DNA of 64,000 bases, taken from the sequence record PQ390715.1; one strand, written 5' to 3'. A program made the position numbers and the translations under genes. This document shows, piece by piece, positions 643-23,212 of the stretch (position 1 is the stretch's first letter; each line of letters starts with the position of its first letter). The notes beneath the pieces were generated by a model. That model saw only the letters and a program-made list of their open reading frames with translations, was not told the origin of the DNA and made no database searches.

Positions 643-709
643 TTTATTACTCCTTTTAGTGGGGGAGGATATCTCCCCCTATGCAAAACATTATACTTTG
701 TTTTAGTTA

Positions 710-973: not shown

Positions 974-1059
974 GGTGTATCTCCCGGACTGGCGGGAGAA
1001 CTATTCCCCCGCTCTATGTAAAACATTATACGTTAATCTAACTACAATGCAAGTACTTT

Positions 1060-1520: not shown

Positions 1521-1604
1521 AATTTTGTTTCCTTTTAGTATCGGGGAGAACTATTCTCCCCTTGATGTAAACTATTATACAGTACTAAGATACTTTGTCA
1601 ATAC

Positions 1605-1826
1605 TTAATTACGTTTAAAATGATATGTACCGTTATCATCCTGTACGCCCCATACTGATTTACCATCAACACCAGTGAAGCCGGATTGTATTTCAATATG
1701 GAAACCATTATTATCAACTACAAAAACTTTTTTATTTTCATCCCGATAACATTGATATTCTGAATCAACATTAAAGGCCGCATCATTCAGAAGATTGGAA
1801 GCGTAAATGCAAGTCATTGTAGTCAT
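1605..1826 (-). CDS. Hypothetical early protein (start moved to MTTMTC)
   Basis: The ORF-track 5' extension runs through the promoter/leader; AAGGA RBS precedes 1826. Confidence 0.75.
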   Translation of the reverse strand: MTTMTCIYASNLLNDAAFNVDSEYQCYRDENKKVFVVDNNGFHIEIQSGFTGVDGKSVWGVQDDNGTYHFKRN

Positions 1827-1946
1827 GATTTTATTCCTTATTCTTTGAGGGAGAACCGTTCCCCCCCTCTCGATATAAAACATTATACTTGATTCTAAGT
1901 ACAATGCAAGTACTTTTTAAAAATAGTTTTCAGTACTGAATACTTA

Positions 1947-2031
1947 TATAATAGATACATTTATGCACCCTGTGGGTCAGTGAGCTATCTCTCAATGAAT
2001 ATATAATAGCAAAGGGACTGACCGAAATCAA
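1947..2031 (-). ncRNA. Family A small structured RNA/element, copy 1
   Basis: TTGATT-17-TATTAT promoter, hairpin TGAG-AGATAG-CTCA, then CCCACAGGGTGCATAAATGTATCTAT; no ORF. Confidence 0.55.
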
Positions 2032-2049
2032 TCCCTTTTTTAATCTTTT

Positions 2050-2634
2050 TTATCGTGTTACTTTACTTGCTGCCACATCACGCTTTTTATAGTACTGATT
2101 CCAGATATTGCGGGTTAAACCGTAATCAAGTACTTTAATAAGTCCATTACGATCCTGGCCGATATTCTGTTTTCTGATATCTCTTATCGTTAGTGTTGAT
2201 AATGTATCATCGACGTGTTGTAGTGCATCAGCAAAGCGGTGCTGGCGTTCAATGGCATTACGTTTAATATTGTACTTTAATTCGTTGCACGCGTTAACGT
2301 GCTTCACACTGCCTTTACTTGCAGTACTCAACCGATCCATAACGATAAACATATTATCAGGATCGCATAAATGCATATGCACCTTTGCAAAGTACTGTTT
2401 CAATTGAGGGCGGTCATAGTCTAAAAAATTCCATACCTTACATTCAGTTTCATTTTGTTCTACACCCGCATCACAATTGGCGACCTTAATCACTAACCGA
2501 TCATTTAAAGCGAATACAATACGGGAAGAACCCGCACCGATGATCTCCAGACCAGCTAACCGACAAGCTGAAAGGATCTCTTTGTTGGTTTCCATTTCTG
2601 ACAGGGTACGGATGAATTTAGTATAATTACGCAT
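2050..2634 (-). CDS. Ser/Thr protein kinase-like protein
   Basis: IGAGSSRIVF Gly-loop, VIKVA lysine, NETE alphaC glutamate, RDIRKQN catalytic loop, VLDYG (DFG equivalent). Confidence 0.8.
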   Translation of the reverse strand: MRNYTKFIRTLSEMETNKEILSACRLAGLEIIGAGSSRIVFALNDRLVIKVANCDAGVEQNETECKVWNFLDYDRPQLKQYFAKVHMHLCDPDNMFIVMDRLSTASKGSVKHVNACNELKYNIKRNAIERQHRFADALQHVDDTLSTLTIRDIRKQNIGQDRNGLIKVLDYGLTRNIWNQYYKKRDVAASKVTR

Positions 2635-2665
2635 TGCATGTTCTCCTTGAGTTAATGAAACTATC

Positions 2666-2908
2666 TTACAGTACTTTACTATCAATGGCAACCACTTTTT
2701 TCACACTTACAGCGTGAATCACTTCCTTAGTGTTTTTAGTACTGAATACTTTCGCTGTTCCATGTTCTACTGCAATGCGATAACGACCGTTAACATCAAC
2801 CATATTAATAAAGTCCGGTGTACTAAACCGAGTAGTACGGCATTTCAGTACTGTTAACAGTTCCACCAGCGATGTAGTTTCTTTGATACGTTTTTCTAAA
2901 GTAATCAT
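2666..2908 (-). CDS. Hypothetical protein
   Basis: Start MITLEK after a GGGG RBS. Confidence 0.65.
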   Translation of the reverse strand: MITLEKRIKETTSLVELLTVLKCRTTRFSTPDFINMVDVNGRYRIAVEHGTAKVFSTKNTKEVIHAVSVKKVVAIDSKVL

Positions 2909-2961
2909 TTTGTTTTCCCCGTGTTGGTATGTACATATAGTACTAAAACATTTGAGTACTG

Positions 2962-3216
2962 TCAACGTGATATTAGTTTTATTTTCTTATTATATTGTTG
3001 GTGTTCATATAGGTTTATCTTTCCTGTGTTCTCAATTACTATTCTGTTGTTAGTGTCTACATCGATTACACGCAGTTTTCCGTTGCTTAACTTCCTTGGT
3101 AATAGGTTACCATTAATAAACTCATTAGCAAGCTGTACGGCCTTTGTGATGATTCTCTGTGGTGCTTTATAGTGTACCCGCAAGATATTATCTTTAGATA
3201 GTTGTACCTTAATCAT
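2962..3216 (-). CDS. Hypothetical protein, possibly ParE/RelE-like fold
   Basis: Pattern P..I..KA..L.....G...RKL.....DV...RI.....L.EH..YNK recalls ParE-like toxin proteins (by eye only). Confidence 0.4.
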   Translation of the reverse strand: MIKVQLSKDNILRVHYKAPQRIITKAVQLANEFINGNLLPRKLSNGKLRVIDVDTNNRIVIENTGKINLYEHQQYNKKIKLISR

Positions 3217-3278
3217 TTTAGTTTATCCTATAAAAAAGGCGGGAACTGATCCCGCCGTGTTGTTAGTACTGCAAGTTA

Positions 3279-3683
3279 TTAGATAACCTGGCGGCGTTTA
3301 CTGTATACTGTTACACGATTACCCTTACGGTCGTGTCGGATCTCTTTCTGGTTGCGAACCAGTTCACTTGGACGCTTAAGGTTTGCCAGGTGATCCGCGT
3401 GAGTCCAAGCGGTATGGTTTGTCTGTACTTTGATATCAGAATCAGCGATAAATTCATCTTGTGCGTTAAGTACTGCCGCCAGTAAATCCGCTCGTTTTAG
3501 TTCTGATGCTGTTAGTACTGGCTCCGGTGAATTCACAATATCAGAGATTTCTTTGAACTGTACGGCCCAGCGTTGGCCTTTCGGTGCATCTTTGCCCATG
3601 TCTTTAAATGCTGCTCCTTCCTCGCGTGCAACAATACGGGCAGCTTCACGGGTAGCGTAGAATTTAGTAATCATGGTATACAT
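3279..3683 (-). CDS. Hypothetical early protein, paralogue of 15333..15599
   Basis: Shared YATRE.AR..AR..GA.FKDMG...G.RWA and HDRKGNRVTVYS. Confidence 0.85.
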   Translation of the reverse strand: MYTMITKFYATREAARIVAREEGAAFKDMGKDAPKGQRWAVQFKEISDIVNSPEPVLTASELKRADLLAAVLNAQDEFIADSDIKVQTNHTAWTHADHLANLKRPSELVRNQKEIRHDRKGNRVTVYSKRRQVI

Positions 3684-3769
3684 CCTATTAGTTGAGATAG
3701 TACTACAAGTTAGAGTCTATTATAAAGTACTATCTGGGCAATGTCAAATAGTACTTTAAATGGATTCTA

Positions 3770-4093
3770 TTACATGTCTTTCTTACGTTTTACATCGTAG
3801 TATCGAACTGTAATTTCTTTGTTGATCTCTTCCTCGATGCGGTGAATAACTTTTTCTTTCGGGTTGAAACCTATAACGGTTTCTTTAATGATCTCCAAGC
3901 CCGTGTATTCGCCTTGTGTACCGTAACCGTATGTAAAGGTTTCGTGTCCCAGGTCTTCCCAGCGGTCGCCAATTAACGCTGACACGTAGCAAGAGTGGTA
4001 AGTATTGCCGTTCCGATCAGTCCAGCGATTAACTTTAATGTCAAAGGAGGTTACAATTTTCAGTTCTACTTTCTGGGTAAGGATCATAGCCAT
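3770..4093 (-). CDS. Hypothetical early protein, paralogue of 9999..10343
   Basis: Shared RW....GNTY.S, YGY and VKRKKD C-terminus. Confidence 0.85.
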   Translation of the reverse strand: MAMILTQKVELKIVTSFDIKVNRWTDRNGNTYHSCYVSALIGDRWEDLGHETFTYGYGTQGEYTGLEIIKETVIGFNPKEKVIHRIEEEINKEITVRYYDVKRKKDM

Positions 4094-4178
4094 TTTTATT
4101 TCTCTCTCTTTGTTAGGAGGGGAACCATTCCCCCCTTGATGTAAACTATTATACAGTACTAAGATACTTTGTCAATAC

Positions 4179-4454
4179 TTAATTATTATAAATGTCGTGA
4201 ATAGTGATAAAGTTTTTACGACCGTAAACCTGCAAATCAATATCAATGTAGTGCTTATCAAGTACATCCTCGACGCTTAACGCGGTGTCGTGAATATCTT
4301 CGTAGAATTGAGGATCTACAATCTTGCTTAAGTCATCCGGCGTTAACTTATCGTTAAGCAGTTGAACCGCCTGGATATCTGCTTCACGTTTCCAGTCTTC
4401 CAGGTTAGTAGTCAGTACTTGTTCGATTTCGTTAGCTGTCAGTAGAATCCGCAT
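4179..4454 (-). CDS. Hypothetical early protein
   Basis: Own promoter and RBS. Confidence 0.75.
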   Translation of the reverse strand: MRILLTANEIEQVLTTNLEDWKREADIQAVQLLNDKLTPDDLSKIVDPQFYEDIHDTALSVEDVLDKHYIDIDLQVYGRKNFITIHDIYNN

Positions 4455-4523
4455 TTTAATGTTTCCTTATCAGGGGTTGATGTAAGTATTATACTCGTTT
4501 ACTTTCTATTGTCAAACTATTTT

Positions 4524-4631
4524 ATCAGGGGAGTTTTTCGTATGTCTTACTCCTGGACTACTTAACGGGGTTACTTGTTTCGTTCCCCGTCCTGATGTAA
4601 AACATTATACTTGATTCTAAGTACAATGCAA
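4524..4631 (-). ncRNA. Family B structured RNA, copy 1 (three-way junction, ~75 nt, with promoter)
   Basis: TTGCAT-16-TATAAT promoter; P1 ATCAGG/CCTGAT, P2 ACGGGG/CCCCGT, P3 GGAGT/ACTCC; no ORF; next promoter follows immediately. Confidence 0.65.
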
Positions 4632-4671
4632 GTACTTTTTTAAAAATAGTTTTCAGTACTATCCACCAGCA

Positions 4672-4751
4672 TATAATAGATACATTTATGCACCCTGTGG
4701 GCTGATTTGTTTCTATGCGTATATAATAGCAAAGGGACTGACCGGAGTCAA
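4672..4751 (-). ncRNA. Family A element, copy 2
   Basis: Promoter followed by CCCACAGGGTGCATAAATGTATCTAT. Confidence 0.55.
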
Positions 4752-5195
4752 TCCCTTTTTCAAATATTTTTAAACTTGTTTTGGGTTGCGATAGGTGATA
4801 GCGTTCGGGTACATTTGTTTAATGTTATTCCATGCCTGGTTAACATTGTAACCACTTGAGCGAATCAGTTGGTTACTACCGACACCTTGAAACACTACTT
4901 CGAATAAGAATTCTTTCATGCTTTCACCTCGCGATCTGCTTTACCTTTACGCCACGACATTACTAATTGTTCGCGTTGCCATAAGTCGAGTGATACAAAA
5001 AGTTTTGCGGTATCACTTTTAGGATACTCGCCATTAGTACCTAACCGATAAAACAGATCTTTCAGTACTGATAATTCTACTTGAATCATTTTATTACTCC
5101 TGATTGCGTTAATACTTCTACTATTGCATGAATGATCATAAGTACAGCTAAAACAATAATCATCGGATTCATTTGCATAAGCTGTACTCCTTATA

Positions 5196-5408
5196 TTAAT
5201 CTTTCAGCCAATGATCCTGAATGAATTTTTCGCCGGAACCTTGCTGCATTGATTGTAACAGACGTTCACGATGAGCGGCGGCGAATTGCTCAGTACTATG
5301 CGTTACGCCAGGCTGATAACGTGATACCCCATCCGGTCCGATGTATTGTACATCCCACGGTTTTTCGTTAGTATCAGACCATTTACGAACGATTAGTTGA
5401 CCTTGCAT
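5196..5408 (-). CDS. Hypothetical early protein
   Basis: Own promoter, leader hairpin and GAGGA RBS. Confidence 0.75.
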   Translation of the reverse strand: MQGQLIVRKWSDTNEKPWDVQYIGPDGVSRYQPGVTHSTEQFAAAHRERLLQSMQQGSGEKFIQDHWLKD

Positions 5409-5492
5409 TTTTCTTTCCTCTTAGTGGGGAGAATCATTTCTCCCCTTCATGTAACTTATTATACAGTACTATAATCTATTGTCAAATACTTT

Positions 5493-5681
5493 TTAAAGTT
5501 TATGAATCAATTCTTTATCTAAGCGATAGCGTACATTATTAATGGTAACAGCATTATTTTTAATGCTACGCTGTACAGGTCCACCAGCAATAACAAACGT
5601 TGCTTTATTACCCCGAACAATGATAGCACTTCCAGGATTACCGAAATCATCTTGTACTAAAATACTTGATAAGTTTTCCAT
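5493..5681 (-). CDS. Hypothetical early protein
   Basis: Leader hairpin and GAGGA RBS. Confidence 0.7.
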   Translation of the reverse strand: MENLSSILVQDDFGNPGSAIIVRGNKATFVIAGGPVQRSIKNNAVTINNVRYRLDKELIHKL

Positions 5682-5759
5682 TTTTATTTCCTCTTAGTAG
5701 GGGAAGATGTTTCCCCTTGATGTAAGTACTATAACAGTACTGAAAACTAAATGCAAGTA

Positions 5760-6116
5760 CTATGATAAAATCATGATAGGATATTCACTATCGATCAGTA
5801 CCTCGAATCCGAAACCTTCGTACCATTCTTTAAGATTAAAGGCGTTATCTTCTCCCGTATCGCATTCTAAAATGATACAATCTGAATCATCGGCGGCATC
5901 AATAAAGGCATTCATTAATTCGTTACCTTCACCATTGCCCCGACTATCAGGATCAACATAAAGAGAATCAATAAACGCTACACGGTCATAATCAAGATCC
6001 GGTGCAATGATTCCACGTTTAACAAACCAGTACTGCAATTGTGCTACTTTGCCCTGTACTTGATAGCCAGTGATCTCGCCATTGTCAGTAGTACGCGTGA
6101 TATGTTGTATTCCCAT
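5760..6116 (-). CDS. GNAT-family acetyltransferase
   Basis: IDSLYVDPDSRGNGEGNELM (motif A R/Q-x-x-G-x-G) and WYEGFGF (motif B). Confidence 0.85.
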   Translation of the reverse strand: MGIQHITRTTDNGEITGYQVQGKVAQLQYWFVKRGIIAPDLDYDRVAFIDSLYVDPDSRGNGEGNELMNAFIDAADDSDCIILECDTGEDNAFNLKEWYEGFGFEVLIDSEYPIMILS

Positions 6117-6179
6117 GATTTCAATCCTCAGTTAAGATATAAAATATTATAAACTATCTTTCAGTACTGTCAATACTTT

Positions 6180-6437
6180 TTATCTCATAGATCTATGCCA
6201 ACAATTACGCGGGGGACGTTTAAAAGTACTATCATGATCCTCCTGGCAAGTTATGCAGTACTTACATCCCTTAACGGCCTGGCGTCGATTCTCAGGGATT
6301 ATATCGCCGCAGTCGAGGCAATGTATCAGTGATTCTATTTGTGCGTTAATTTGCTTTCTAGCGTGGTTAACGGCGGCCTGAATCACTGCGTTAATCTCGT
6401 CTTGTTCGGCCCCATCTTTCGCGAATCCTACAGCCAT
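6180..6437 (-). CDS. TraR/DksA C4 zinc-finger protein (YbiI/TraR-like)
   Basis: GFAKDGAEQDEI N-terminus; CLDCGDIIPENRRQAVKGCKYCITCQ finger. Confidence 0.9.
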   Translation of the reverse strand: MAVGFAKDGAEQDEINAVIQAAVNHARKQINAQIESLIHCLDCGDIIPENRRQAVKGCKYCITCQEDHDSTFKRPPRNCWHRSMR

Positions 6438-6677
6438 TATTTTAACCTCATTATAAAAATACTATAGTACTGTAATGCGACAATAATATTACTTGTTCTT
6501 ACTTTTTCCAATCCACATGATACCACATATTCATCCCCATATGTGCGAAACGATACACCATGAAAATTTTTATACACTTGCACTACTAATCATAACCTTT
6601 CGTCTAACCAACTGCATAGAATTATACTACTTTACGCAAATTGATCAAGTATTGATCAGATCATTTTTTGATCAATA

Positions 6678-6764
6678 TTATACAGTTACATTTGTGCACC
6701 CTATGGGTTAGTGACGTTCTCGTCTTGATGTAAGTATTATGCCAGTACTTGATGATATTGTCAA
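6678..6764 (-). ncRNA. Family A element, copy 3
   Basis: TTGACA-17-CATAAT; hairpin GACG-AGAA-CGTC; CCCATAGGGTGCACAAATGTAACT. Confidence 0.55.
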
Positions 6765-6768
6765 TAGT

Positions 6769-6966
6769 TTATTTTAATTTTTTTCTGTCATTGATTAATG
6801 CTTTCAGTACTATACTAATGATTTGCAATGATTCATCAATGACTATAAAATTATTCTCTTTCATTAGATGATAGTTACCATTGATTGTATATTCTAAGGA
6901 GTACTGTTTACGTTTAATTTTTGATAATGTTTCTATTTGTTTTTGTACTGATTTCATGCTAATCAT
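6769..6966 (-). CDS. Hypothetical protein
   Basis: 65-aa ORF with RBS. Confidence 0.6.
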   Translation of the reverse strand: MISMKSVQKQIETLSKIKRKQYSLEYTINGNYHLMKENNFIVIDESLQIISIVLKALINDRKKLK

Positions 6967-7577
6967 TGTTAAACGTCCTGTAACGCATTCTAACGAGATA
7001 AACGGTTTAGTACTGGCATTGTATAGGGTAATGAATTAAAGCCCACCAGCGTTAACCAGTGGGCTATAATCTTACATCTTGCGGATAATCTTAACAGTAT
7101 CTTTCACCGATTTACCGTCTTGCTGGCATTGCTCGATCATTGCGTATTGTTCTGCTGTAAGATCCTCGCCAGTTTTTGCCAGTACTGCGTCGATGAATGA
7201 ATCCAGTGCGATCATTTTGTTTCTCTCTTAGGTTAAGTTAACTACTGTTTATAAAACTTATTATACAGTACTATCAAACGTTGTCAATATCTTTAATAGT
7301 ACTGGTAATATATTTTAGCGGTAATCGTCGTATGCTTTATTCACCTGGCGAATGTAACTTTCAAAGGCTTCGTCTACCGTTTCATACTCCCGAACATAAT
7401 CACCATAGGAAACTACATACATACCTTTTTGATCTTCAAACGTCATGATGATAGAATCCAGACCAACGATTTCAGTTTTTGCGATGATAGCCATTTTTTA
7501 ATTCCTTAGTAGTGTAGTTGATAAAACTTATTATGCCAGTACTATCAATCATTGTCAATAGTACTGTGATAATATTT

Positions 7578-7790
7578 TTAGTTAATGATAGTCAGTGTAA
7601 AATTGTAATCCCCTGCCTGGTATAGTACTTTGTCGCCGAACGTACCAACACGTTTCATATTGCAATAGATACCCATAACACTTTTTACATCTTTGATATT
7701 CCGAACGCCTGTGATATCCTTGTTGAAATTTTCATGATCAGAAAATAAAACTTGTTTTGCATTTTTCAGTACAGTGCAGATATTAGCCAT
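7578..7790 (-). CDS. Hypothetical early protein
   Basis: Own promoter and leader hairpin. Confidence 0.75.
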   Translation of the reverse strand: MANICTVLKNAKQVLFSDHENFNKDITGVRNIKDVKSVMGIYCNMKRVGTFGDKVLYQAGDYNFTLTIIN

Positions 7791-7884
7791 TTTGTTTTCT
7801 CTTTGTTAGTGGGGAGAACTATTCTCCCCTTGATGTAACTTATTATACAGTACTATAATCTATTGTCAAACTATTTTTTTTATA

Positions 7885-8226
7885 TTATTCGAAATCTTCT
7901 GGACCGGACTGATAATCATCTTCACCGTATGCACTTTCTAACCGCTCGCCAGTGTGATCATCAGTTAGTGAGTCATCCTCATAGTTCACGTCTACGCCCG
8001 TGATGTAAAACTGGCTATCGTCTGGATCATTGAAATTAATTTTCTGAATGTTTACAATAACGGTATTGATGCCCAGGACACCGCCATCAGCAGTTACAAA
8101 GTACTGATAGTTTTCACAACCGCCTGAATTGAAACCGTAATTAATTTCGGCCCGACCATCATTTAAACGCAGTGCCTGGGCGATGATTTCGTTTTCAAAG
8201 TTAGATTGAGCAATTGAGATAGTCAT
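7885..8226 (-). CDS. Hypothetical acidic early protein (start MTISIA)
   Basis: Own promoter, leader hairpin and AAGGA RBS. Confidence 0.75.
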   Translation of the reverse strand: MTISIAQSNFENEIIAQALRLNDGRAEINYGFNSGGCENYQYFVTADGGVLGINTVIVNIQKINFNDPDDSQFYITGVDVNYEDDSLTDDHTGERLESAYGEDDYQSGPEDFE

Positions 8227-8342
8227 GATTCGTTTCCTTATTACCAGGGGAAACCGTTTCCCCTCTCGATGTAAAACATTATACGCCAATTGAGATAGTT
8301 TGCAAGTACTTTTTAAAAATAGTTTTCAGTACTCAATACTTA

Positions 8343-8427
8343 TATAATAGATACACTTATGCACCCGGTGGGCTAGTGATCTATCTCTCAATGAATATAT
8401 AATAGCAAAATGGCTGACCGAAGTCAA
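8343..8427 (-). ncRNA. Family A element, copy 4
   Basis: Promoter within a UUCG terminator; CCCACCGGGTGCATAAGTGTATCTAT. Confidence 0.55.
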
Positions 8428-8440
8428 CCACTTTTTTCAT

Positions 8441-8575
8441 TTATTTTTTAGCTTTCAGTACTGCCGCCTTTCGCGTCATGCCTTGCTTAATGTACTCCTT
8501 TACTTTCGCTTTACGTGCTTTCGCTTTATCTGCTTTCGTTTTAGGAGTACTGTAAATTAAACCGTTAGGATTCAT
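8441..8575 (-). CDS. Small highly basic protein (44 aa, MNPNGLIYSTPKTKADKAKARKAKVK...)
   Basis: Manual translation; below the ORF-track cutoff; ends just before a terminator. Confidence 0.55.
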   Translation of the reverse strand: MNPNGLIYSTPKTKADKAKARKAKVKEYIKQGMTRKAAVLKAKK

Positions 8576-9112
8576 TTAAATCACCATAAAGAATAGATAG
8601 GTTACTAACAATGCCGCGATCAATGCACCGATCACCGCTGAACTGTAATAAGCTAATGATTTCATTTTTTAGCCTGGAAGTAATGTTTAATTTGTGCGGC
8701 GGTCAGTGCACAATTTCGCAGGAAGTTTTCTGTATAACTGCGGCGAGTACTGAAAGAGAATTGACCTTTGCCGTTGCCGATAGTAACATCAAACCGAGCG
8801 TTGTATTGTTTCATTTTGATTCTCCTTGTATCAGGGGAGAACCATTTCCCCCCTCTATGAAAACCATTATACAGTACTGAAAACTAATTGCAAGTACTAT
8901 TTTTTAGATTTACGCAAACTTTCTACCATCTCAGGAGTAAGGCCCGGCGGGTAGGAAACCACTTCATCAACGAAACGTAAAGGGAATACCCCAGCGAAAG
9001 GTGAACATGCTTTCTTGGTATTACTCTTTTTTGATGCTTTCATTTCATATTCCTTAATTAGTGGGGAGAATCATTTCTCCCCTTCATGTAAAACATTATA
9101 CGCGTTTAAAAA

Positions 9113-9322
9113 CTAATTGCAAGTATTATTTTCTAAAAAATGATTGTATGCTGCATCAACCACTCTTTCGATAACATACGCCAACGGCACGTATCCAACT
9201 ACATGACTACAATAGAAAGGACTGCGATTAGAATCATCGTATGCAAATACTTTACCAGGTACGGCATCAATCACATACATATTAACCTTTAAGATGTCGA
9301 TCTTATCCTGTACAGTAAGCAT
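9113..9322 (-). CDS. Hypothetical protein
   Basis: Co-oriented, tightly packed ORF. Confidence 0.65.
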   Translation of the reverse strand: MLTVQDKIDILKVNMYVIDAVPGKVFAYDDSNRSPFYCSHVVGYVPLAYVIERVVDAAYNHFLENNTCN

Positions 9323-9327
9323 ATTAA

Positions 9328-9597
9328 TTAACCTTTTAAGTACTGACTCAAATAGTCTTTTTGTTCTTCGGTGATTGGCGGCATCTTCCCTAGTACTGGA
9401 TTAATGATATAATCCCCCGTCACGTCCTGTGATGCGTTCTCAGTACTAGCAACCGGACGGATACGGGCCATCGCCTGGGCTTGTTCTACACTGTAACGCT
9501 CATAAAGGCGGCATTCTTCCGGTGTAGGAATTGCATCAATTCGTTTCATTGGTTTAATGATGCTTTCAACTTCATTCAGTACTTGATTAACGTTCAT
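9328..9597 (-). CDS. Hypothetical protein
   Basis: GAGGA RBS. Confidence 0.7.
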   Translation of the reverse strand: MNVNQVLNEVESIIKPMKRIDAIPTPEECRLYERYSVEQAQAMARIRPVASTENASQDVTGDYIINPVLGKMPPITEEQKDYLSQYLKG

Positions 9598-9648
9598 GGT
9601 ATAATCCTCAATATAAGCGGCCTAAATCAACCGCTAACGATGTTTTGA

Positions 9649-9918
9649 TTAATAGGTGTATGGTTGACGCTCAAACAATGATTGCACGTTGTACGCCCCG
9701 CTAATGGGCTTCGCTGGCAAATCAATTTTATATTGTTCACGCTTAAAGATAATAAAACGACAATTGTTCTTAACATCAAAATTGATTGAACGTTCCAGGA
9801 GTTTACCATTGTGCACAAATACAAGATAACCGCTCGCTACTTGTTTTGTAGTACTGGTTGCAACCATTGACCGCCGAACATGTGTACCTGCATCGATTAA
9901 AGTACTGATATTTTTCAT
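9649..9918 (-). CDS. Hypothetical early protein
   Basis: GAGGA RBS and upstream promoter-like element. Confidence 0.7.
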   Translation of the reverse strand: MKNISTLIDAGTHVRRSMVATSTTKQVASGYLVFVHNGKLLERSINFDVKNNCRFIIFKREQYKIDLPAKPISGAYNVQSLFERQPYTY

Positions 9919-9998
9919 TATACTATCCTCTTAATTTGATTTAATTTCTTTCCCCTATGCAGACACTATATCAAAGTATCTGCATAAAGTAAAGCTAA

Positions 9999-10343
9999 TT
10001 AAAGATCTTTTTTGCGTTTAACATCAGTTACCGAACTGTAAACAGTGATATTATTGTCACGACAAAAACGGGAAAGATAAGAACCGTGTAAAAACTCTTT
10101 ATCTTCCATATTAATAACCTTGCTAAATTCTTCCATTGCTACAGTGTCAAAGTGATCCTCGTATCCATATTTGAACGGCACGTTTACTACTTCAATAAAT
10201 TCGCCATTGATTTCTACGTCTACCGTTAAAGAGAAATAAGTGTTACCATATGAAGCCTGGAACCAACGCCGAGCGGCAATATGTACAACTTCAACAGAAG
10301 ACAGGTTGATGTTTTGTGCTGCGATAGTGTTGATGTTAGCCAT
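9999..10343 (-). CDS. Hypothetical early protein, paralogue of 3770..4093
   Basis: Shared motifs; own promoter. Confidence 0.85.
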   Translation of the reverse strand: MANINTIAAQNINLSSVEVVHIAARRWFQASYGNTYFSLTVDVEINGEFIEVVNVPFKYGYEDHFDTVAMEEFSKVINMEDKEFLHGSYLSRFCRDNNITVYSSVTDVKRKKDL

Positions 10344-10655
10344 TTTTTGTTTCCTCTTAGTTGTCTTGATAAAATCTATTATGCCAGTACTATCAATCTA
10401 TGTCAATAGTACTGTGATAATAATTTTACTTACTTTTTGCTTTCTTTACAGCTTCCACCTGGTCGGCCCACTCTTTACCCCATACTTGAGCATTATAGTG
10501 ATACTGACAAAGAGCAACGCCCCGTTTCAAACCAGTAATAGATTTTTTACCACATTGACAAGTTTTCATATTAGTTTCCTCATTATCAGGGAGAACCATT
10601 TCTCCCCTTGATGTAATGTATTATACTTTATCTGATTTACTTTGCAAGTACTTTT

Positions 10656-10883
10656 TTAATTTAATTCATCCAGGCAAAGGATACGATCTACACCCAAATC
10701 AGTTAAGCTAATAGACGGCACTTGATAGGTTTCAATGTATGCTACATCGGCCCACTGACCGAACTCACCTGCCGCCCAGTTATACATTGCAAAATGTAAT
10801 TCCGCACCTTTCTTATTAGTAATTACAGCAACAGTAGAAGAATTGCCAGTAGTACCAGATACGCGAGTGATTACGATAGCCAT
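10656..10883 (-). CDS. Hypothetical early protein (start MAIVIT)
   Basis: Own promoter and leader hairpin. Confidence 0.75.
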   Translation of the reverse strand: MAIVITRVSGTTGNSSTVAVITNKKGAELHFAMYNWAAGEFGQWADVAYIETYQVPSISLTDLGVDRILCLDELN

Positions 10884-11168
10884 TGTTTTGATTCCTTTGA
10901 TTTGGAAGGAGAACCGTTTCCCCCTCTCGATGTAAAACATTATACGCTAATCTCTTAATCGTGCAAGTACTTTTTATTACTTTTTGCAAAATACTTTAAA
11001 CGCACTCAATCGCATTCTAACGACTTTAACGCCACCAGCTAGGGCAATACATCAGATAAACAGTTTAATACGTTAGAATCGATTCTAGGCGGTGCTAGTG
11101 GACTGGAATACTATAGACACAAAAAAGCCCACTGTTTAAGGTGGGCTAGTGATTCAGTACTTTAATTG

Positions 11169-11651
11169 TTATGCTTCAACTTTGCGATGAGCTTCGATCC
11201 ATTCCTCGCGAGTCATACCACTGGAGTTAATCGCATCCAGTACTACCGCAATGCAGTTACCACGCACCGGAATCAGATATTCTTCCCCGTTATCAAGTAC
11301 TACCGCTACACGCTCTTGAATCCATTTTTTAGGCTTAGATTCCGGCTTATCTTCACCGTACTTTTTCGCCAGGGCTTTTTGTGCCATCTCTGTAACTACT
11401 TCCAGATCCAATCCAACTACTGCCGCTTGGATACTTTCAATTGTTGCTTGTAGTTCTGCTTCACGGGCCGCCTTCGCTGCTTCAATCTCTGCCGCTTTAT
11501 TTGCTTGTAGTTCTTTCGCAGTACTGTAAGCGATGTTAAAATTATTGCGTACCGCTTTCATGGTATCGTTATCCAGTTCAGCCAGGATCTCTGCCGCGAC
11601 GTTAGTTTCATTTGCTACCAGTGCTTTGATGAATGATTTTACATTAGCCAT
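11169..11651 (-). CDS. H-NS-like protein with a divergent DNA-binding motif
   Basis: N-terminal Ala/Glu coiled coil; C-terminal VLDNGEEYLIPVRGNCIAVVLDAINSSGMTREEWI aligns by eye with H-NS [35 protein letters not shown]. Confidence 0.6.
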   Translation of the reverse strand: MANVKSFIKALVANETNVAAEILAELDNDTMKAVRNNFNIAYSTAKELQANKAAEIEAAKAAREAELQATIESIQAAVVGLDLEVVTEMAQKALAKKYGEDKPESKPKKWIQERVAVVLDNGEEYLIPVRGNCIAVVLDAINSSGMTREEWIEAHRKVEA

Positions 11652-11713
11652 TTTATAAATCCTCAATTAAAGTTTAGTTTACGTTTATTAGTGTATCAAA
11701 GTTTTCTCGACGT

Positions 11714-11802
11714 GTCCAGTTTTTCGTTCGACTTACTGGCGGTCTACTTAGTGTTCCCCGTCTTGATGTAATACATTCTACGCCTTTTTGCGGTAATGTC
11801 AA
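11714..11802 (-). ncRNA. Family B RNA variant, in the leader of the H-NS-like gene
   Basis: TTGACA-16-TAGAAT; ACGGGGAAC..TAAGTAG..CCAGT-AAGTCGAACGAAAA-ACTGG (compensatory change versus GGAGT/ACTCC). Confidence 0.6.
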
Positions 11803-11884
11803 CTACTTTTTTAAAACTATTTTCAAAGTATCTCAGTACTACTGTACTACAAAAACAAAAAAGCCCACCAGGTGGGCTATGTAC

Positions 11885-12115
11885 TTAATCAGTAATTAAA
11901 ACATTAAACACTTTATCATTTAACGTTATGGGTGTACTGCTACCAGGCTTGAGATCAGTTAGTACACCTGCAATAGCTTTTTCATTGGCGACCTTTCCAG
12001 TGTCCAACAGTACTACAGTACTGATAAGATTAACGCTCGTTTCAATATCATAATGCACGGCGTTAAGTAGTTGTGTAGTACTGCTTTCGTTAAGTAAAAC
12101 AATTCGCTTAGTCAT
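11885..12115 (-). CDS. Hypothetical protein
   Basis: Followed by a terminator (CCCACCAGGTGGG). Confidence 0.7.
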   Translation of the reverse strand: MTKRIVLLNESSTTQLLNAVHYDIETSVNLISTVVLLDTGKVANEKAIAGVLTDLKPGSSTPITLNDKVFNVLITD

Positions 12116-12136
12116 GATGTTACCCCGTAGTATCTA

Positions 12137-12436
12137 TCAACGGCAATTAATAACGCCGGTATGAGTTACTTTCTCAGTATCCATAACAGTGACCGAACCG
12201 CGTTTAGTACTGGCATCATAATAAATTGTTGTGCTACCGTTTTCGTCTTCTTCATGGAACGGGCCGTTTTTAAATGCTTCCGGCTGGATCTCTAAATCCT
12301 TTAATACAATCTCGCCAGTTCTTTCATCGGTCATTGCAACAGTGCACTGAATGAATTTATCACCAGGTACATCTAACGACGCATTAACAGCGAAAGAGGA
12401 AACAGATAAAGCCAGGGCGATGATTGCAATTTTCAT
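12137..12436 (-). CDS. Putative secreted/periplasmic protein
   Basis: Signal-peptide-like MKIAIIALALSVSSFAVNA. Confidence 0.7.
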   Translation of the reverse strand: MKIAIIALALSVSSFAVNASLDVPGDKFIQCTVAMTDERTGEIVLKDLEIQPEAFKNGPFHEEDENGSTTIYYDASTKRGSVTVMDTEKVTHTGVINCR

Positions 12437-12520
12437 TTGATTATCCTTAGTTACCAGGGGGAACCGCTCCCCCTTGCGATGTAAAATATTATACAGTACT
12501 AAAAACTAATTGCAAGTACT

Positions 12521-12757
12521 TTATGATTTTTTATAAAACATTTCAGCAGTGATATTTTTACCCGTTGGTTGTACTTTATCCAGAATTTTTTGATGTCCAG
12601 GCCGTCCAAATGAATAAGATCCGTAAACAGTAAACCAGTAGTTACCCTCAGTGTTTACATGTACAGCACAATAGGGAACGCCCCGCGATTCATCACTAGT
12701 AAAGTGTGATACCGTACCCGTTACATTCGCAGACGTTGATTTGATTTGTTCGACCAT
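12521..12757 (-). CDS. Hypothetical early protein
   Basis: Own promoter and leader hairpin. Confidence 0.75.
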   Translation of the reverse strand: MVEQIKSTSANVTGTVSHFTSDESRGVPYCAVHVNTEGNYWFTVYGSYSFGRPGHQKILDKVQPTGKNITAEMFYKKS

Positions 12758-12865
12758 TTTCTTATTCCTTAGTTACCAGGGGAACCGCTCCCCCTATGCA
12801 AAACATTATACGCGTTTAAAAACTAATAGCAAGTATTTTAATAAAAAGTATTTGGAAAATAATTG

Positions 12866-12950
12866 TTGACAAGTGCATCCAGTACTGGCATAATTACTAC
12901 ATCAAGACGAAACAGTCACTAACCCACCGGGTGCCGAGATCCGTCTATTA
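12866..12950 (+). ncRNA. Family A element, copy 5 (opposite orientation)
   Basis: TTGACA-17-CATAAT; GAC-GAAACA-GTC; CCCACCGGGTGCC. Confidence 0.55.
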
Positions 12951-12999
12951 AATGATTCAGTACTAAAAAAAGAAAGGGGATCAATTGATCCCCTCGTTG

Positions 13000-13221
13000 T
13001 TATTTTGTAAGGTATAAACAGAAGTCACCTTTATTTGCTACGCCGCCAGTGTAACGCGAGGAATAGTTAGAAACGTCCTGGACTTCTGCTATTACCAGGG
13101 TATCATCATTCAATTCGTCGCAGAAGCAAACGGCTGGATCTTGTACGCCGATATTGTCGGCATGTTCCCGCATAGATTTAACCAGTGCTTCAAGTTGGGA
13201 AAGAGTAGTGATATTAGCCAT
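13000..13221 (-). CDS. Hypothetical early protein
   Basis: Own promoter, leader hairpin, terminator at 12975-12994. Confidence 0.75.
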   Translation of the reverse strand: MANITTLSQLEALVKSMREHADNIGVQDPAVCFCDELNDDTLVIAEVQDVSNYSSRYTGGVANKGDFCLYLTK

Positions 13222-13304
13222 TTTATTTTCCTCATTACCAGGGAGAACCATTTCTCCCCTTGATGTAAACTATTATACAGTACTAAAAACTAATTGCAAG
13301 TACT

Positions 13305-13586
13305 TTAACTGTAAGATCCGCAACGGTCGCAGTAGTGCCCCTCGTCATCGTCAACGAATTGACCAACGAAATTATCTACTTTCGCTTTCAGGTTATTATA
13401 ATCGTTTTCTACTTCATTTAAACGCTTCTGGTAGTATTCCAGTGCTTTAAGATATGCCGCATCAGCAGTTTTCTCCTGCATAGCTAAATTCATGCCACGC
13501 GTTTCATCGTACAGCCAAAAACCATCGGTGCACTGGCTAATAGATAATGACTTGCTTAGTACTGTATAGTTAATTACTTTACTCAT
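13305..13586 (-). CDS. Hypothetical early protein (start MSKVIN)
   Basis: Leader hairpin and GAGGG RBS; C-terminal CDRC. Confidence 0.75.
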   Translation of the reverse strand: MSKVINYTVLSKSLSISQCTDGFWLYDETRGMNLAMQEKTADAAYLKALEYYQKRLNEVENDYNNLKAKVDNFVGQFVDDDEGHYCDRCGSYS

Positions 13587-13644
13587 TAGATAAACCCTCA
13601 ATAAAGGCGGGAACCATTCCCCGCCATTGTTACAGTACTGAATA

Positions 13645-13884
13645 TTACATTCCAACCATTGCAGCACGGATCGCAGTAGTGCTATACTTAAAGCCGTCCG
13701 GCGTTGTAGTAGTACCGTTGGCTTTTAATCTGCGGTACATGCATTCCGCTGCAATATCTTTAGTTCTACTTTGTGCGATACAACTTTGTGCAAGCCGATA
13801 CAATGACTCACCGTTATTAATCCATAAGGAAACATTCCAATGAGTTTTGTTTTTGTGCCCGTTGTAAGTTTTAGTACTAGCCAT
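13645..13884 (-). CDS. Conserved phage protein (YNG...W.VSLWINN type), paralogue of 15686..15925
   Basis: Near-identical HKNKTHWNVSLWINN and TPDGFKYSTTAIRAAMVGM. Confidence 0.85.
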   Translation of the reverse strand: MASTKTYNGHKNKTHWNVSLWINNGESLYRLAQSCIAQSRTKDIAAECMYRRLKANGTTTTPDGFKYSTTAIRAAMVGM

Positions 13885-13976
13885 TTTTTTTAATCCTCGT
13901 TTGAGCGGGGAACCACTCCCCGCCTCGATATAAAGTATTATACGCCTTTAAACTTAGTTTGCAAGTACTTTTTAAA

Positions 13977-14588
13977 TTAATATTCGATTGATTCTACTAC
14001 GCCATCAATAACATTGAATTGATATTCGTTACCCTCAATCAGTGCTGTAATGTTTTCAGTAGTGAATTGATCCTCATATGCATTCTCTAAATCACGGTAC
14101 AACTTGCGGGATAATTCACGAATAGTTTCAGTGAGTAGTTCCTCAAGCTCATTAACTAACGTTTCTTGTTTTGCGGTTAAATCAGTGTAAGCCGATTCAA
14201 TGTACCCGCTTACAGTGTTTTCATGCGAGTAGTGGGAGTGAGAACGCTTTACACTCATCGCCAAATCATCTTCATTCAGCAGGTGACGGATTGAGCGATA
14301 CTTAGTTAATGCTCTTACCTTGCGTAAAAACTTCACTGCGTCAACGTGGTCAGTACTGATTGATGCACCGTCACCCTGGGACCAAAAACCACTGAATTGT
14401 ATTTCAGCGTCATTAATGCCATATTCCGGCAATACTGTTTCTTTATAGTGTTCAATTTCACTTTCAGAAAAATAATCGTCGTTTGAGTTTTTTTCACGTT
14501 CCCGAACCAGTTCGATAGCTGACGTTTTTTGTTCTGCGTTCAATTCAGAAAAATCCATAACGAAAGTAGTAGTAGTGATAGTTTTCAT
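13977..14588 (-). CDS. FSGFWSQGDGA-motif protein (family often annotated as TA antitoxin-like)
   Basis: TTT.V..F.EL..EQK..A N-terminus and IQFSGFWSQGDGAS motif; annotation from recall. Confidence 0.55.
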   Translation of the reverse strand: MKTITTTTFVMDFSELNAEQKTSAIELVREREKNSNDDYFSESEIEHYKETVLPEYGINDAEIQFSGFWSQGDGASISTDHVDAVKFLRKVRALTKYRSIRHLLNEDDLAMSVKRSHSHYSHENTVSGYIESAYTDLTAKQETLVNELEELLTETIRELSRKLYRDLENAYEDQFTTENITALIEGNEYQFNVIDGVVESIEY

Positions 14589-14656
14589 TTTGTAACTCTC
14601 ATTCAGTAGTTGATGTAAGTATTATACGCTTTTAAAAACATTTGTCAAACTATTTT

Positions 14657-14766
14657 ATCAGGGGAGTTTTTCGTGTGCCTTACTCCTGGGCTACTTAACG
14701 GGGAGTTACTTATTTCGTTCCCCGTCCTGATGTAAAACATTATACGCCTTTAAACATAGTTTGCAA
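14657..14766 (-). ncRNA. Family B structured RNA, copy 3
   Basis: Near-identical to 4524-4631, with changes confined to loops and linkers. Confidence 0.65.
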
Positions 14767-14811
14767 GTACTTTTTAAAAATAGTTTTCAGTACTGAATAT
14801 TAAAAAAAGTA

Positions 14812-14890
14812 TTGACAGCATTATCAAGTACTGGCATAATATACCCCATGACAACAGCTAACCCACCGGGTGCACAATTGTAACTATACT
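14812..14890 (+). ncRNA. Family A element, copy 6
   Basis: TTGACA-17-CATAAT; CCCACCGGGTGCACAATTGTAACTAT; converges on copy 7. Confidence 0.55.
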
Positions 14891-14899
14891 AAACTACTT

Positions 14900-14984
14900 T
14901 TTCTATAGATACACTCCCGCACCCTATGGGCTACGGCTTATCTGCCAATGAATACATTATGCCAGTACTGACAAAATAAGTCAA
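14900..14984 (-). ncRNA. Family A element, copy 7
   Basis: TTGACT-17-CATAAT; GGC-AGATAA-GCC; CCCATAGGGTGCGGGAGTGTATCTAT. Confidence 0.55.
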
Positions 14985-15014
14985 TACCGGCAATTGTAAA
15001 GATTTGTAAACTGC

Positions 15015-15245
15015 TTATACTGCAATCGCGTCCAGGCTATAATAATAATAAGTGCCGTATTGGTGTACTTTATTACCTTTTATTTCAGTACTGAATGAAT
15101 CCGAACGGTTTGCATATGATGTTAATTTAAAGTACTTTGATTTGCTGATACGTTGCCATACACCGCAGATCCGCTGTAAGTAAGTAGTTTTATTAGTGGT
15201 AGTATCTTTTACGGTTTTAACTTCAGTCATATACATATTAGTCAT
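15015..15245 (-). CDS. Hypothetical early protein
   Basis: Own promoter and GGAG RBS. Confidence 0.75.
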   Translation of the reverse strand: MTNMYMTEVKTVKDTTTNKTTYLQRICGVWQRISKSKYFKLTSYANRSDSFSTEIKGNKVHQYGTYYYYSLDAIAV

Positions 15246-15332
15246 TTTTATTACTCCAGGTTATAGGCGGGAAGTGTTCCCGCTCTCGATGTAAAACATT
15301 ATACTCCATTAAACATAGTTTGCAAGTACTTT

Positions 15333-15599
15333 TTATTCAAGTACTGCAATCTTTTTAGTACTGTACACAGTAACGCGGTTGCCCTTGCGGTCGTGCTTTA
15401 TTTCTACCACTCGACGCGATACACTATCGGGACTTTTTAACGCCGCTAACCAGTACTGTAATGATCTGGCTGTACTACGCTTTACAATGGCCCAACGTTT
15501 ACCACGTTCCGATTGTACGCCCATATCTTTAAACGTTGCCCCGTCCTGGCGTGCGGCGATCCGAGCTTGTTCACGCGTCGCAAAATACTTAATATTCAT
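15333..15599 (-). CDS. Paralogue of 3279..3683 (start MNIKYF)
   Basis: Shared motifs. Confidence 0.8.
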   Translation of the reverse strand: MNIKYFATREQARIAARQDGATFKDMGVQSERGKRWAIVKRSTARSLQYWLAALKSPDSVSRRVVEIKHDRKGNRVTVYSTKKIAVLE

Positions 15600-15685
15600 G
15601 CTGTTGCCCTTATCGTTGGTGTATGAATAAAACACTATTATAAAGTACTATCGCAAAAAAATGATAGTACTTTAAATAAATTCTA

Positions 15686-15925
15686 TTACATTCCAACCAT
15701 TGCCGCACGGATCGCAGTAGTGCTATATTTGAATCCGTCCGGTGTTTTATCTTGTCCAGTCTGTTCTAAAAATAACATCATATGACGGGCCGCATCATTG
15801 CGATTAGTGCTATCGTTAATAAAGTCCTGGGCCAACCGGTATAATGATTCATCGTTATTAATCCAAAGGCTTACATTCCAATGAGTTTTGTTTTTGTGAC
15901 CTAAGAACATTTTTGATTTAGCCAT
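15686..15925 (-). CDS. Paralogue of 13645..13884
   Basis: Shared motifs; own promoter and leader. Confidence 0.85.
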   Translation of the reverse strand: MAKSKMFLGHKNKTHWNVSLWINNDESLYRLAQDFINDSTNRNDAARHMMLFLEQTGQDKTPDGFKYSTTAIRAAMVGM

Positions 15926-16017
15926 TTTTTAATCCTCTTATATAGTGGGGAACTATTCCCCACCTGATAGAAAGTATTATACTTGTTTTAACTTAGTATG
16001 CAAGTACTTTATTAAAC

Positions 16018-16380
16018 TTATTCGTAAATTTTGCCACTGTCAGCCCATACCAGGAAACGAGGCATATTATCCCATGCATCTTGTTTTAAATTTAAACCGT
16101 GTAATACTTCTGTACTTTCCATTCCTGGTACTGGTTTACTATACACCGCGAACAATTCGCCCATGTACTGATAAGCCATCGTTAAATCACTGGCGATCAT
16201 CTTATGGATCATCGCATCAAGCATCACGGTTGCGGCGTATTGTTCACGCTTAAGCGGTAACATTGCAATAAGTTCCCGATAAGCTGAAATGTGAATCTTT
16301 ACCGTTTCAGCCGGAAGACCTTTCATCTCTTCACGGAAGTTAACCAGGTTAGCAATAATTTTAGTGATTTGAGTCGCCAT
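16018..16380 (-). CDS. Hypothetical early protein (start MATQIT)
   Basis: Own promoter and leader. Confidence 0.75.
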   Translation of the reverse strand: MATQITKIIANLVNFREEMKGLPAETVKIHISAYRELIAMLPLKREQYAATVMLDAMIHKMIASDLTMAYQYMGELFAVYSKPVPGMESTEVLHGLNLKQDAWDNMPRFLVWADSGKIYE

Positions 16381-16509
16381 CGTTTTAATCTCTCGTAATG
16401 TGTAGCAGGAAGTGTTCCCGCTCTCGATGTAAAACATTATACGCTTTTTTCAGTACGGTGCAAGTACTTTCTACAAATACTTTTTAAAATAGTTTTCTTT
16501 CTATATAGG

Positions 16510-16601
16510 AGTACTATTATTCAGTACTATTATTCAGTACTATCATTCAGTACTGCAACCATCCAGGGGAACTATCTTTCTATATAGGGGAACTATCTTT
16601 C
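16510..16601. repeat. 4 x 13-bp AGTACTATYATTC tandem repeat plus 2 x GGGGAACTATCTTTC
   Basis: AGTACT at 16510, 16523, 16536, 16549; direct repeats at 16566 and 16587. Confidence 0.9.
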
Positions 16602-16766
16602 AGTACTGAATCAACCAAATCACTACTACACCCCATAAAACGGCCTCAGACGCATTCTAACGCATTAATACACCTAAGCTATACATTTGCACCATTCCAA
16701 TCATTCCAGGGCTTTACGGGCCGTTTAAACGCGTTAAATTATTTTCAATTATTTTGTTTTTAGGTA

Positions 16767-17066
16767 TTGACTTGATCCTGAAAAAGCGTATAATTACTAC
16801 ATAGACGCGAGAAAGCGGAAACCCCAGAGGGTGCGGAATTACGCCCAAAATTCAAGATATAAAAAAAGGATACACTCCCGCACCCTAGCAGGTAAACGCA
16901 CTTTCTCAGTACTGAAATATAGTACCATAGTCCGGCCCAGGATGGCAAGCAAATTAATTAAAACTTTTTTCATCCAGGGTATTGCTTTATTTTTCCAGTA
17001 CTGTATAATAGTTCCATCAAGTCGAGAAAGACTCAAGCCCACCGGGTGCATAGTTACGCCCAAAAT
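16767..17066. ncRNA. Family A elements, copies 8-10 (16767+, ~16869-16948-, 16982+)
   Basis: Promoters with CGC-GAGAAA-GCG and AGTC-GAGAAA-GACT hairpins and a GGGTGC core; the two + copies share TTACGCCCAAAATTCA. Confidence 0.5.
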
Positions 17067-17599
17067 TCAGTACTGAAAAAATTTTTAAAAATATCCGGCC
17101 AGGTCGTTGACATTGCCCCCAGTTTATAAGATAATGATTCCAGATTCAGAAAAATCTAACTACAGATACTGCGGGGAAACTATCCCCACGCGGTAGGGGA
17201 ACTATTGGAAAAACAAAATAAAATTTTGATTTAGCCGTCTATACTTCCAGCCATCCAGAAATCTAGCCGTTTAGCCGTCTAGATGGATAGCCATCTTTAC
17301 TTCCAGACTTCTGGAGGGCTAGACATATCTACGTCCAAAATCCATCCAGGGTAACTACACCCAAAATCCGTCAGTACTATACCATAGATCTATCTTTTGA
17401 AAGGGAGTATTCAGTACTGCCATCATAGCCCTCACTATGTTACCCTAGGAGGATGAAGACTATCATGTAGTACTGAATACTGTTAGAGGGAATCCACCAG
17501 CTTGTGCTGGTGGCATAATGCTTTAGATTAAAATCAGTACTGACACCATTCTGTTAATATCAGTACTGTTATTACAATTTTCATATGAGGTTCAAAAAG

Positions 17600-17725
17600 A
17601 TGTACCACCACAGGAGGAACTATCTTTTCTGTACTGTCTCACGACAGGAGGTAGAGTAAATGAATTGTTCGCAGCAACTCATCTCTCTATGTAGAACATT
17701 ATACAGTACTGAATCATAATGTCAA
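17600..17725 (-). ncRNA. Candidate ORF-less structured RNA with its own promoter
   Basis: TTGACA-16-TATAAT; ATGAGTTG/CAATTCAT stem; CTGTC-GTGA-GACAG GNRA hairpin. Confidence 0.45.
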
Positions 17726-23187: not shown

Positions 23188-23212
23188 GTGTAGTTCTCCT
23201 TATATTCCTTCT

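Follow-up and report, generated by a model that had tools for sequence, protein, structure and literature searches.

The put RNAs of phage HK022 are leader RNAs of an early operon that fold into two long stems, arranged in a V shape with a triplex, and are cis-acting antiterminators that bind RNA polymerase (PMC9378689). One of them, putL, is about 70 nucleotides (nt) long, contains several helices, sits right downstream of promoter PL and acts alone on RNA polymerase without a phage protein (PMC9378689). Here we describe a structured RNA element that occurs in three copies in a 64,000-nt stretch of DNA (sequence record PQ390715.1; the window) from an Asteriusvirus jumbo coliphage, and whose core is also present in the A1 leader of phage T7. 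The element is very probably a real RNA structure maintained by selection, and is best filed as a new class within a known kind, the structured leader RNAs found in phage early operons.

Three copies of the element in the window

An earlier note on this DNA, made without database searches (the sequence-only reading), had proposed three copies of a three-way-junction RNA, and both a pattern search and a core covariance model match all three where they had been placed, on the minus strand. A 30-nt pattern with 20 specified bases has exact matches at 4535-4564 (copy 1), 11721-11750 (copy 3) and 14668-14697 (copy 2), with 0.01 matches expected by chance, and the core model detects only these three copies in the 64-kb window (52.9-58.1 bits, the next best hit scoring 8.6). 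All three conform to the definition of the motif family, which consists of UAAGUAG, a spacer of N3-4, a hairpin of 4-5 bp (P3) with the loop UAAG-N4-ACGAAA-NN, and a closing helix whose 3' strand begins 0-4 nt past the hairpin, and the closing helices are seen in their folds. The ORF (open reading frame) list places the genes of window positions 1-18,000 on the minus strand, and the RNA proposed in the sequence-only reading is therefore that of the minus strand.

The minimum free energy of copy 1 is -20.5 kcal/mol (z -2.78) and that of copy 2 is -21.8 kcal/mol (z -2.81), and the minimum-free-energy structure of each is identical to the one drawn beforehand, with P1 AUCAGG/CCUGAU, P2 ACGGGG/CCCCGU and P3 GGAGU/ACUCC; the plus-strand sequence of both copies gives a weaker and different fold. 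Copies 1 and 2 differ from each other in the loops of P2 and P3 and in the junction alone, in agreement with the earlier assignment of these differences to loops and linkers. Copy 3 retains ACGGGGAAC, UAAGUAG and the P3 loop and has P3 changed to CCAGU/ACUGG, also as previously read, but the three-way junction that had been extended to all three copies holds for copies 1 and 2 only. Copy 3 has lost the 3' strand of P2 by deletion and is closed by GACG/CGUC together with AUCAA/UUGAU, so that it has a two-helix form reaching to about position 11696.

The surroundings of copy 1 are 100% identical to Escherichia phage SHEFM2K, and this region is 91-98% identical in other Asteriusvirus jumbo phages (PBECO4, 121Q and G17). 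The counterpart stretch of G17 lies within the direct terminal repeat and contains packed small hypothetical genes on a single strand with many predicted terminators; in phage records where the terminal repeat is resolved, the copy number of the element is doubled.

Distribution among phages

When sequence databases were searched by BLAST with the 91-nt element, it was found in all 38 of the 38 Asteriusvirus-type records, and also, with an identity of 87-95%, in some Justusliebigvirus phages (muut, outra and EmilieFrey) and some Vequintavirinae (A73, W70, A7_1 and A5-4). In these phages, too, the element begins where a sigma-70 promoter has its +1, and another promoter comes after it. The gene downstream of the same element is different in muut, EmilieFrey, A73 and A7_1, and the element therefore behaves as an independent cassette. 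A jumbo-phage contig of IMG/VR (L007) has a divergent copy that led to more lineages, namely Salmonella phage Munch, Klebsiella phages K64-1 and RaK2, Erwinia phage Hallingskeid and the podovirus Pantoea phage LIMEzero. In LIMEzero the element is flanked by two annotated host promoters, and the T7 A1 leader holds the same core in the form CCGG-GGUCAA-CCGG-A-UAAGUAG-ACAG-CCUG-AUAAGUCGCACGAAAAA-CAGG-UA, after which comes the A2 promoter's -35 box; no feature is annotated at this core in the T7 record (NC_001604). BLAST with the T7 segment returned 493 phage records, mostly Autographiviridae, with hosts in Escherichia, Klebsiella, Salmonella, Yersinia, Enterobacter, Citrobacter, Shigella and Serratia, and a pattern scan of IMG/VR added about 35 true T7-like variants among chance matches. 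The strict pattern used in the first metagenome and IMG/VR scans gave few additional copies, and a looser one gave many chance matches, which were filtered by P3 pairing. Unrelated phage families carry the motif, and in two of them it is present in some members alone. A homologue search in related phages, named as a check in the sequence-only reading, yields relatives in other Rak2-like jumbo, Justusliebigvirus, Vequintavirinae, LIMEzero and T7-like phages, among which P3 covaries. We also note two further diverged copies in EJP2 (locus L022; 5278-5348 and 8994-9070), in which P2 is either shortened or replaced and of which one shows a compensatory P3 change, GGUGU/ACACC.

No Rfam 15 family matches at the gathering threshold across the whole window, and at E<=10 nothing overlaps the element in the window, T7, LIMEzero, muut or Munch loci, in line with the suggestion that the motif is unnamed. 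ARAGORN finds no tRNA or tmRNA genes in the window. The motif has no match in 5,426 E. coli genomes, and a scan of 185,579 species genomes gave eight matches, seven of them chance matches and the eighth a T3-like phage contig; host origin or mimicry of a host RNA was rejected on the ground that no true copy was found in the bacterial chromosomes searched. The literature search found no description of the motif or of a T7 leader RNA element, only papers printing the template sequence, and as it covered the open-access literature and not older work on T7, an earlier description is possible.

Consensus structure and covariation

The functional core is made up of the closing helix, the single-stranded junction UAAGUAG and the P3 hairpin, with P2 as an optional peripheral arm. 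Across 27 distinct cores, 92.6% of the P3 cells are paired and the covariation score is reached by none of 500 shuffles; the variants are GGAG/CUCC, GGUG/CACC, CCAG/CUGG, CCUG/CAGG and CUUG/CAAG, and in three of the four inner pairs both partners are exchanged (C-G/G-C, C-G/G-C/U-A and U-A/A-U). In many relatives U.C takes the place of U-A as the fifth pair of P3. Among the closest relatives alone, the helices of the sequence-only reading are 96.5% paired and covariation is weak (29 of 500 shuffles). The only double change there is in P3, where an EJP2 copy has U-A for A-U, and P2 has four G.U pairs. A model built from this close family alone still detects the distant members, at 14.9-37 bits. 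In a model-fitted cross-lineage alignment, which leans toward the structure, double changes are seen in 15 of the 17 pairs of P1, P2 and P3, and L007 and Munch build the same three-way junction from P1 and P2 sequences that are wholly unlike. On the gene strand, paired cells include 25 G.U as against 8 A.C.

In 19 T7-like sequences, P2, P3 and a pseudoknot helix are jointly 97.4% paired, with double changes in 10 of 14 pairs and 0 of 500 shuffles on all five measures. The pseudoknot helix joins the P2 loop to the five bases after P3 (GUCAA/UUGAC, GAUUAG/CUAAUC, GUCGGU/ACCGAC and GUCAUC/GAUGAC), and the T7-like fold is accordingly drawn from these alignments as a predicted H-type pseudoknot. 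This helix is the T7 counterpart of the closing helix and is invisible to minimum-free-energy folding; in nine of ten folded representatives the minimum-free-energy fold joins the 5' region of the transcript to the bases right after P3. As judged from the sequences, P3 has covariation support in all lineages; in the jumbo lineages P1 and P2 have it too, and in the T7-like phages so does the H-type pseudoknot. The invariant bases are unpaired, and comprise AAGUAG (usually UAAGUAG) in the junction, and UAAG, a C and A-C/U-GAA in the loop. UAA faces GAA directly above P3, an arrangement that may resemble the UAA/GAN internal-loop motif. With helices that covary across distant phage lineages, no match in Rfam 15 and no paper found that describes it, the element corresponds well to the functional, apparently unnamed structured RNA of the original proposal.

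Promoters, leader position and downstream genes

All three copies begin at +1 of an early promoter of the sigma-70 type. Copies 1 and 2 start 6-8 nt 3' of a TATAAT box and their P1 begins no more than 2 nt from +1, which agrees with the earlier claim that they start at a promoter +1 (Table 1). No terminator-like site lies between either copy and the promoter that follows it, and, unless processing occurs, the RNA is therefore a leader that continues into the promoter and gene that come next. The description of these two copies as standing alone is thus correct in that the next promoter follows directly, but not in that the transcript would end with the element. Copy 3 forms the 5' untranslated region (UTR) of a minus-strand gene at 11169-11651, which had been called H-NS-like; Pfam gives no H-NS match for it, and we note only weak, below-threshold matches (Tox-PL-2, Sf6 terminase small subunit-like and HTH domain).

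The same arrangement recurs throughout the family. In nearly all true instances the -10 box of a sigma-70-like promoter ends 22-61 nt before UAAGUAG, and in most of them the -35 box of the next promoter begins 8-30 nt past the P3 loop; the gap to the next promoter ranges from 8 to >45 nt, copy 3 is without a next promoter, and in T7, as in LIMEzero, annotated promoters flank the element on both sides. All located instances are within terminal repeats or a few kb from a genome end. The gene after copy 1 (4179-4454, minus strand), its promoter and its 5' UTR are nearly identical in Justusliebigvirus muut (locus L002, 2652-2927), an unrelated phage, which indicates that whole early cassettes have recently been exchanged between phage families.

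The early region of the window contains numerous promoters on the same strand, together with terminator-like hairpins. About 25 of the early promoters on the minus strand of 1-18000 belong to a single repeat family (D1) of the form TTGCAA/TTGACA-16-TATAAT, with AGTACT and an A/T tract upstream; transcripts from them begin at +1 with AUCGAG/AUCAAG and continue into a plain GGGGAGAA-NNNN-UUCUCCCC hairpin just ahead of the Shine-Dalgarno sequence. The three-copy element is an elaborate alternative to this standard plain-hairpin early leader, with which it has the start sequence in common.

Table 1. Positions of the element, its parts and the adjacent promoters in the window
Feature	Position	Strand	Details
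Copy 1, three-way junction	4524-4598	minus	Core model 58.1 bits, full model 106.2 bits
Copy 1, helices	P1 4596-4591/4529-4524; P2 4590-4585/4570-4565; P3 4553-4549/4534-4530	minus	
Copy 1, unpaired parts	Junction 4564-4554; P3 loop 4548-4535	minus	Junction UAAGUAGUCCA
Promoter upstream of copy 1	4604-4631	minus	-35 TTGCAT 4631-4626, 16-nt spacer, -10 TATAAT 4609-4604; likely +1 A4598 or A4596; member of D1 family (25 copies); 9/12 consensus match
Perfect promoter directly 3' of copy 1	4488-4515	minus	TTGACA-16-TATAAT, 12/12; drives 91-residue gene 4179-4454
Copy 2, three-way junction	14657-14733	minus	Core model 54.5 bits, full model 107.5 bits
Copy 2, parts	P1 14731-14726/14662-14657; P2 14725-14719/14704-14698; junction 14697-14687; P3 14686-14682/14667-14663	minus	P2 of 7 bp
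Promoter upstream of copy 2	14739-14766	minus	TTGCAA-16-TATAAT, 10/12
Perfect promoter directly 3' of copy 2	14621-14648	minus	TTGACA-16-TATAAT, 12/12; drives 203-residue gene 13977-14588
Copy 3, reduced form without P2	11696-11769	minus	Core model 52.9 bits, fold and sequence
Copy 3, closing helix	AUCAA 11767-11763 and GACG 11762-11759 with CGUC 11712-11709 and UUGAU 11700-11696	minus	
Copy 3, core	UAAGUAG 11750-11744; P3 11739-11735/11720-11716	minus	P3 CCAGU/ACUGG
Promoter of copy 3	11775-11802	minus	TTGACA-16-TAGAAT; terminator-like hairpin 11878-11862 upstream
D1 early-promoter repeats, examples	8243-8288, 10585-10630, 12453-12498, 13237-13282, 15263-15308	minus	

Other repeats are also evident in the window. 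A terminator-like hairpin of the AAGGGCUGACCGAAGUCAACCCUUU type, with both loop and stem conserved, recurs at 2011-2038, 4731-4758 and 8407-8434 and in about nine copies within 42181-55996; its conservation far exceeds the needs of a terminator, and some copies are annotated as terminators in G17. At about 23200-35600 on the plus strand there are about 11 tandem paralogous units of about 1.2 kb each (repeat families D2, D6, D10 and D11), each with a conserved promoter/hairpin block and a conserved start of the coding sequence.

Possible functions of the element

The presence of invariant unpaired bases within covarying helices, the independence of the downstream gene and the spread over phages that are unrelated but share one host order suggest a conserved partner in the host, rather than a phage protein or control of a particular gene, and it is reasonably probable that the element works by binding a host factor. 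We propose that host sigma-70 RNA polymerase would transcribe the structured leader from the +1 of early promoters in the early-gene region of the terminal repeat, and that the invariant unpaired bases would provide a binding surface for a conserved host component rather than for a phage protein or a metabolite. The likeliest partner would be the elongation complex that has just made the RNA, bound in cis in the manner of HK022 put; polymerases so bound, coming from the outermost early promoter, would resist pausing and both intrinsic and Rho-dependent termination as they read inward through the promoter/terminator cassettes. An interaction in cis with the elongation complex is favoured by the putL-like size, by the putL-like place after a promoter and by a location near the genome ends, where the element opens the earliest transcripts made by host polymerase. 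From this comparison we tentatively suggest RNA polymerase as the host factor and processivity as the outcome. It is more doubtful that the outermost host-polymerase promoter of T7 and of many other phages of enteric bacteria has a previously unrecognised class of nascent-RNA regulator built into it, one that would make E. coli RNA polymerase processive by binding it during elongation, or by binding a core factor of elongation or termination.

Several points weigh against an effect on processivity. Nearly every gene in the window has its own promoter, and read-through is therefore not obviously needed; moreover, the stronger promoter is usually the one directly after the element, and polymerases starting there would lack it. 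Similarity to put is absent, and a put homologue was rejected as a candidate, the best core-model score being 7.6 bits (E 1.3) in HK022 24000-32000, a segment chosen for the immunity/put region in which the put sites themselves were not located. T7 is not known to have a terminator before TE, the conserved loops would be equally fit for any RNA-binding protein, and the grounds from which the function is inferred are circumstantial.

The main alternative is a role in trans, in which the leader would be cut out and a stable, closed-ended small RNA would accumulate as a decoy early in infection, titrating either a defence sensor or an RNA-binding protein of the host; the cut could be made, for instance, by RNase E, in A/U-rich sequence past P1, or, in T7, by RNase III at R0.3. 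The strong promoters, the cassette behaviour independent of the downstream gene, the invariant unpaired motifs, the joining of 5' and 3' ends by P1 in the jumbo forms and the restriction of the motif to phages in the E. coli and species genome scans would all suit such an RNA, but no terminator or recognisable processing site marks a 3' end, and copy 3 is merely a 5' UTR. In T7-like phages, furthermore, the 3' strand of the closing helix serves also as the next promoter's -35 box, and the RNA runs on into mRNA. Titration of CsrA, whose sites the element had been said to resemble, was rejected: the GGA motifs are inside the P1 and P3 stems and not exposed, and in relatives the GGA-bearing P3 stem is replaced by CCAG or CCUG. 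The proximity of P1 to +1, and the approximately 25 other early promoters that lead into a plain 5' hairpin with the same AUCGAG/AUCAAG start, would be consistent with a 5'-end stabiliser or insulator that guards early transcripts against decay dependent on RppH and RNase E, like the GGGGAGAA/UUCUCCCC hairpins. We regard this as less likely, since such a role does not need loop and junction sequences that are invariant from T7 to jumbo phages, and the T7 core is some 40-97 nt into the transcript, behind another 5' hairpin.

The riboswitch-like and ribozyme-like options of the sequence-only reading fare worse. A compact junction or pseudoknot with invariant unpaired bases is what a ligand-sensing or self-cleaving RNA might show, but none of the riboswitch or ribozyme models in Rfam matches at E<=10 and the downstream genes are unrelated among themselves; copies 1 and 2 have neither a terminator before the next promoter nor a Shine-Dalgarno sequence, or a platform sequestering one, after them, and with the expression platform absent a riboswitch in particular is improbable. 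Functions of this kind are thus very unlikely. Least probable of all, we believe, is a feature of the promoter cluster at the level of DNA, such as a spacer, an UP-like element or a recombination module in which RNA pairing is incidental. The element is nearly always wedged between two promoters and overlaps the next -35 box in T7-like phages, as such a feature might, but its pairing is preserved by compensatory changes, G.U pairs occur on one strand only, and the gap to the next promoter is variable, with copy 3 having none. A coding peptide was also considered unlikely, as there is no ATG on the RNA strand and a seven-codon antisense ORF is not conserved in copy 2.

Implications

If the structure is as proposed, then the T7 A1 early leader, which is among the best-studied DNA in molecular biology, contains a conserved, unnamed pseudoknotted RNA, and one module that heads the earliest transcripts is carried or exchanged by unrelated phages, whose size ranges from 39 kb in podoviruses to 350 kb in jumbo myoviruses. 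The enterobacterial host would then have a shared vulnerability or resource that phages address by RNA instead of by protein. Should the processivity reading be true, the element would help the transcription that expresses the leading genome end and that, in T7, pulls this end into the cell. The motif can also be used as a marker of early promoter clusters in new phage genomes.

Comparison with known systems

The element resembles HK022 put in being a leader of similar size just downstream of an early sigma-70 promoter, within an early operon. It differs in that there is no match in sequence or structure, the element being a junction with a short hairpin, and a put-like activity is a conjecture. 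The lambda nut sites and the boxA/boxB signals of rrn operons are likewise leader RNA signals, those of lambda in early operons, and T7 and LIMEzero have a boxA-like sequence after the motif region; in contrast, there is no boxA near the window copies and no recognisable N-type partner in the cassettes. The sole exact boxA match in the window, the 12-nt GCTCTTTAACAA at 56359-56370 (plus strand), is antisense within a minus-strand ORF (56180-56530) and is therefore probably coincidental. We note that in LIMEzero (locus L027, 900-934) a second UAAGUAG stands directly after the element and that a boxA-like CGCUCUUUA lies somewhat further downstream (about 921-935), as it does in the T7 A3 leader (locus L029, about 430-445); T7-like early leaders may thus combine the motif with a boxA signal. 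With the ompA-type 5' stabiliser hairpins and the plain hairpins of the window, the element shares a start at +1 and a paired 5' end, although its core is far more elaborate and sequence-constrained and is conserved across phage families.

The T7 A1 leader, between the E. coli promoters A1 and A2 (NC_001604, about 537-594), differs from the window copies in the position of its core, deeper in the transcript, and in that P2 (CCGG/CCGG) and the closing helix would form an H-type pseudoknot and not a three-way junction. The T7 leader shares with them UAAGUAG, N4 and P3 with the loop (A)UAAG-N4-ACGAAAAA, scores 62.4 bits with the core model, is sandwiched in the same way between two promoters, and has an initial transcribed sequence, AUCGAGAGGG, similar to the AUCGAG/AUCAAG start of the standard early leaders of the window.

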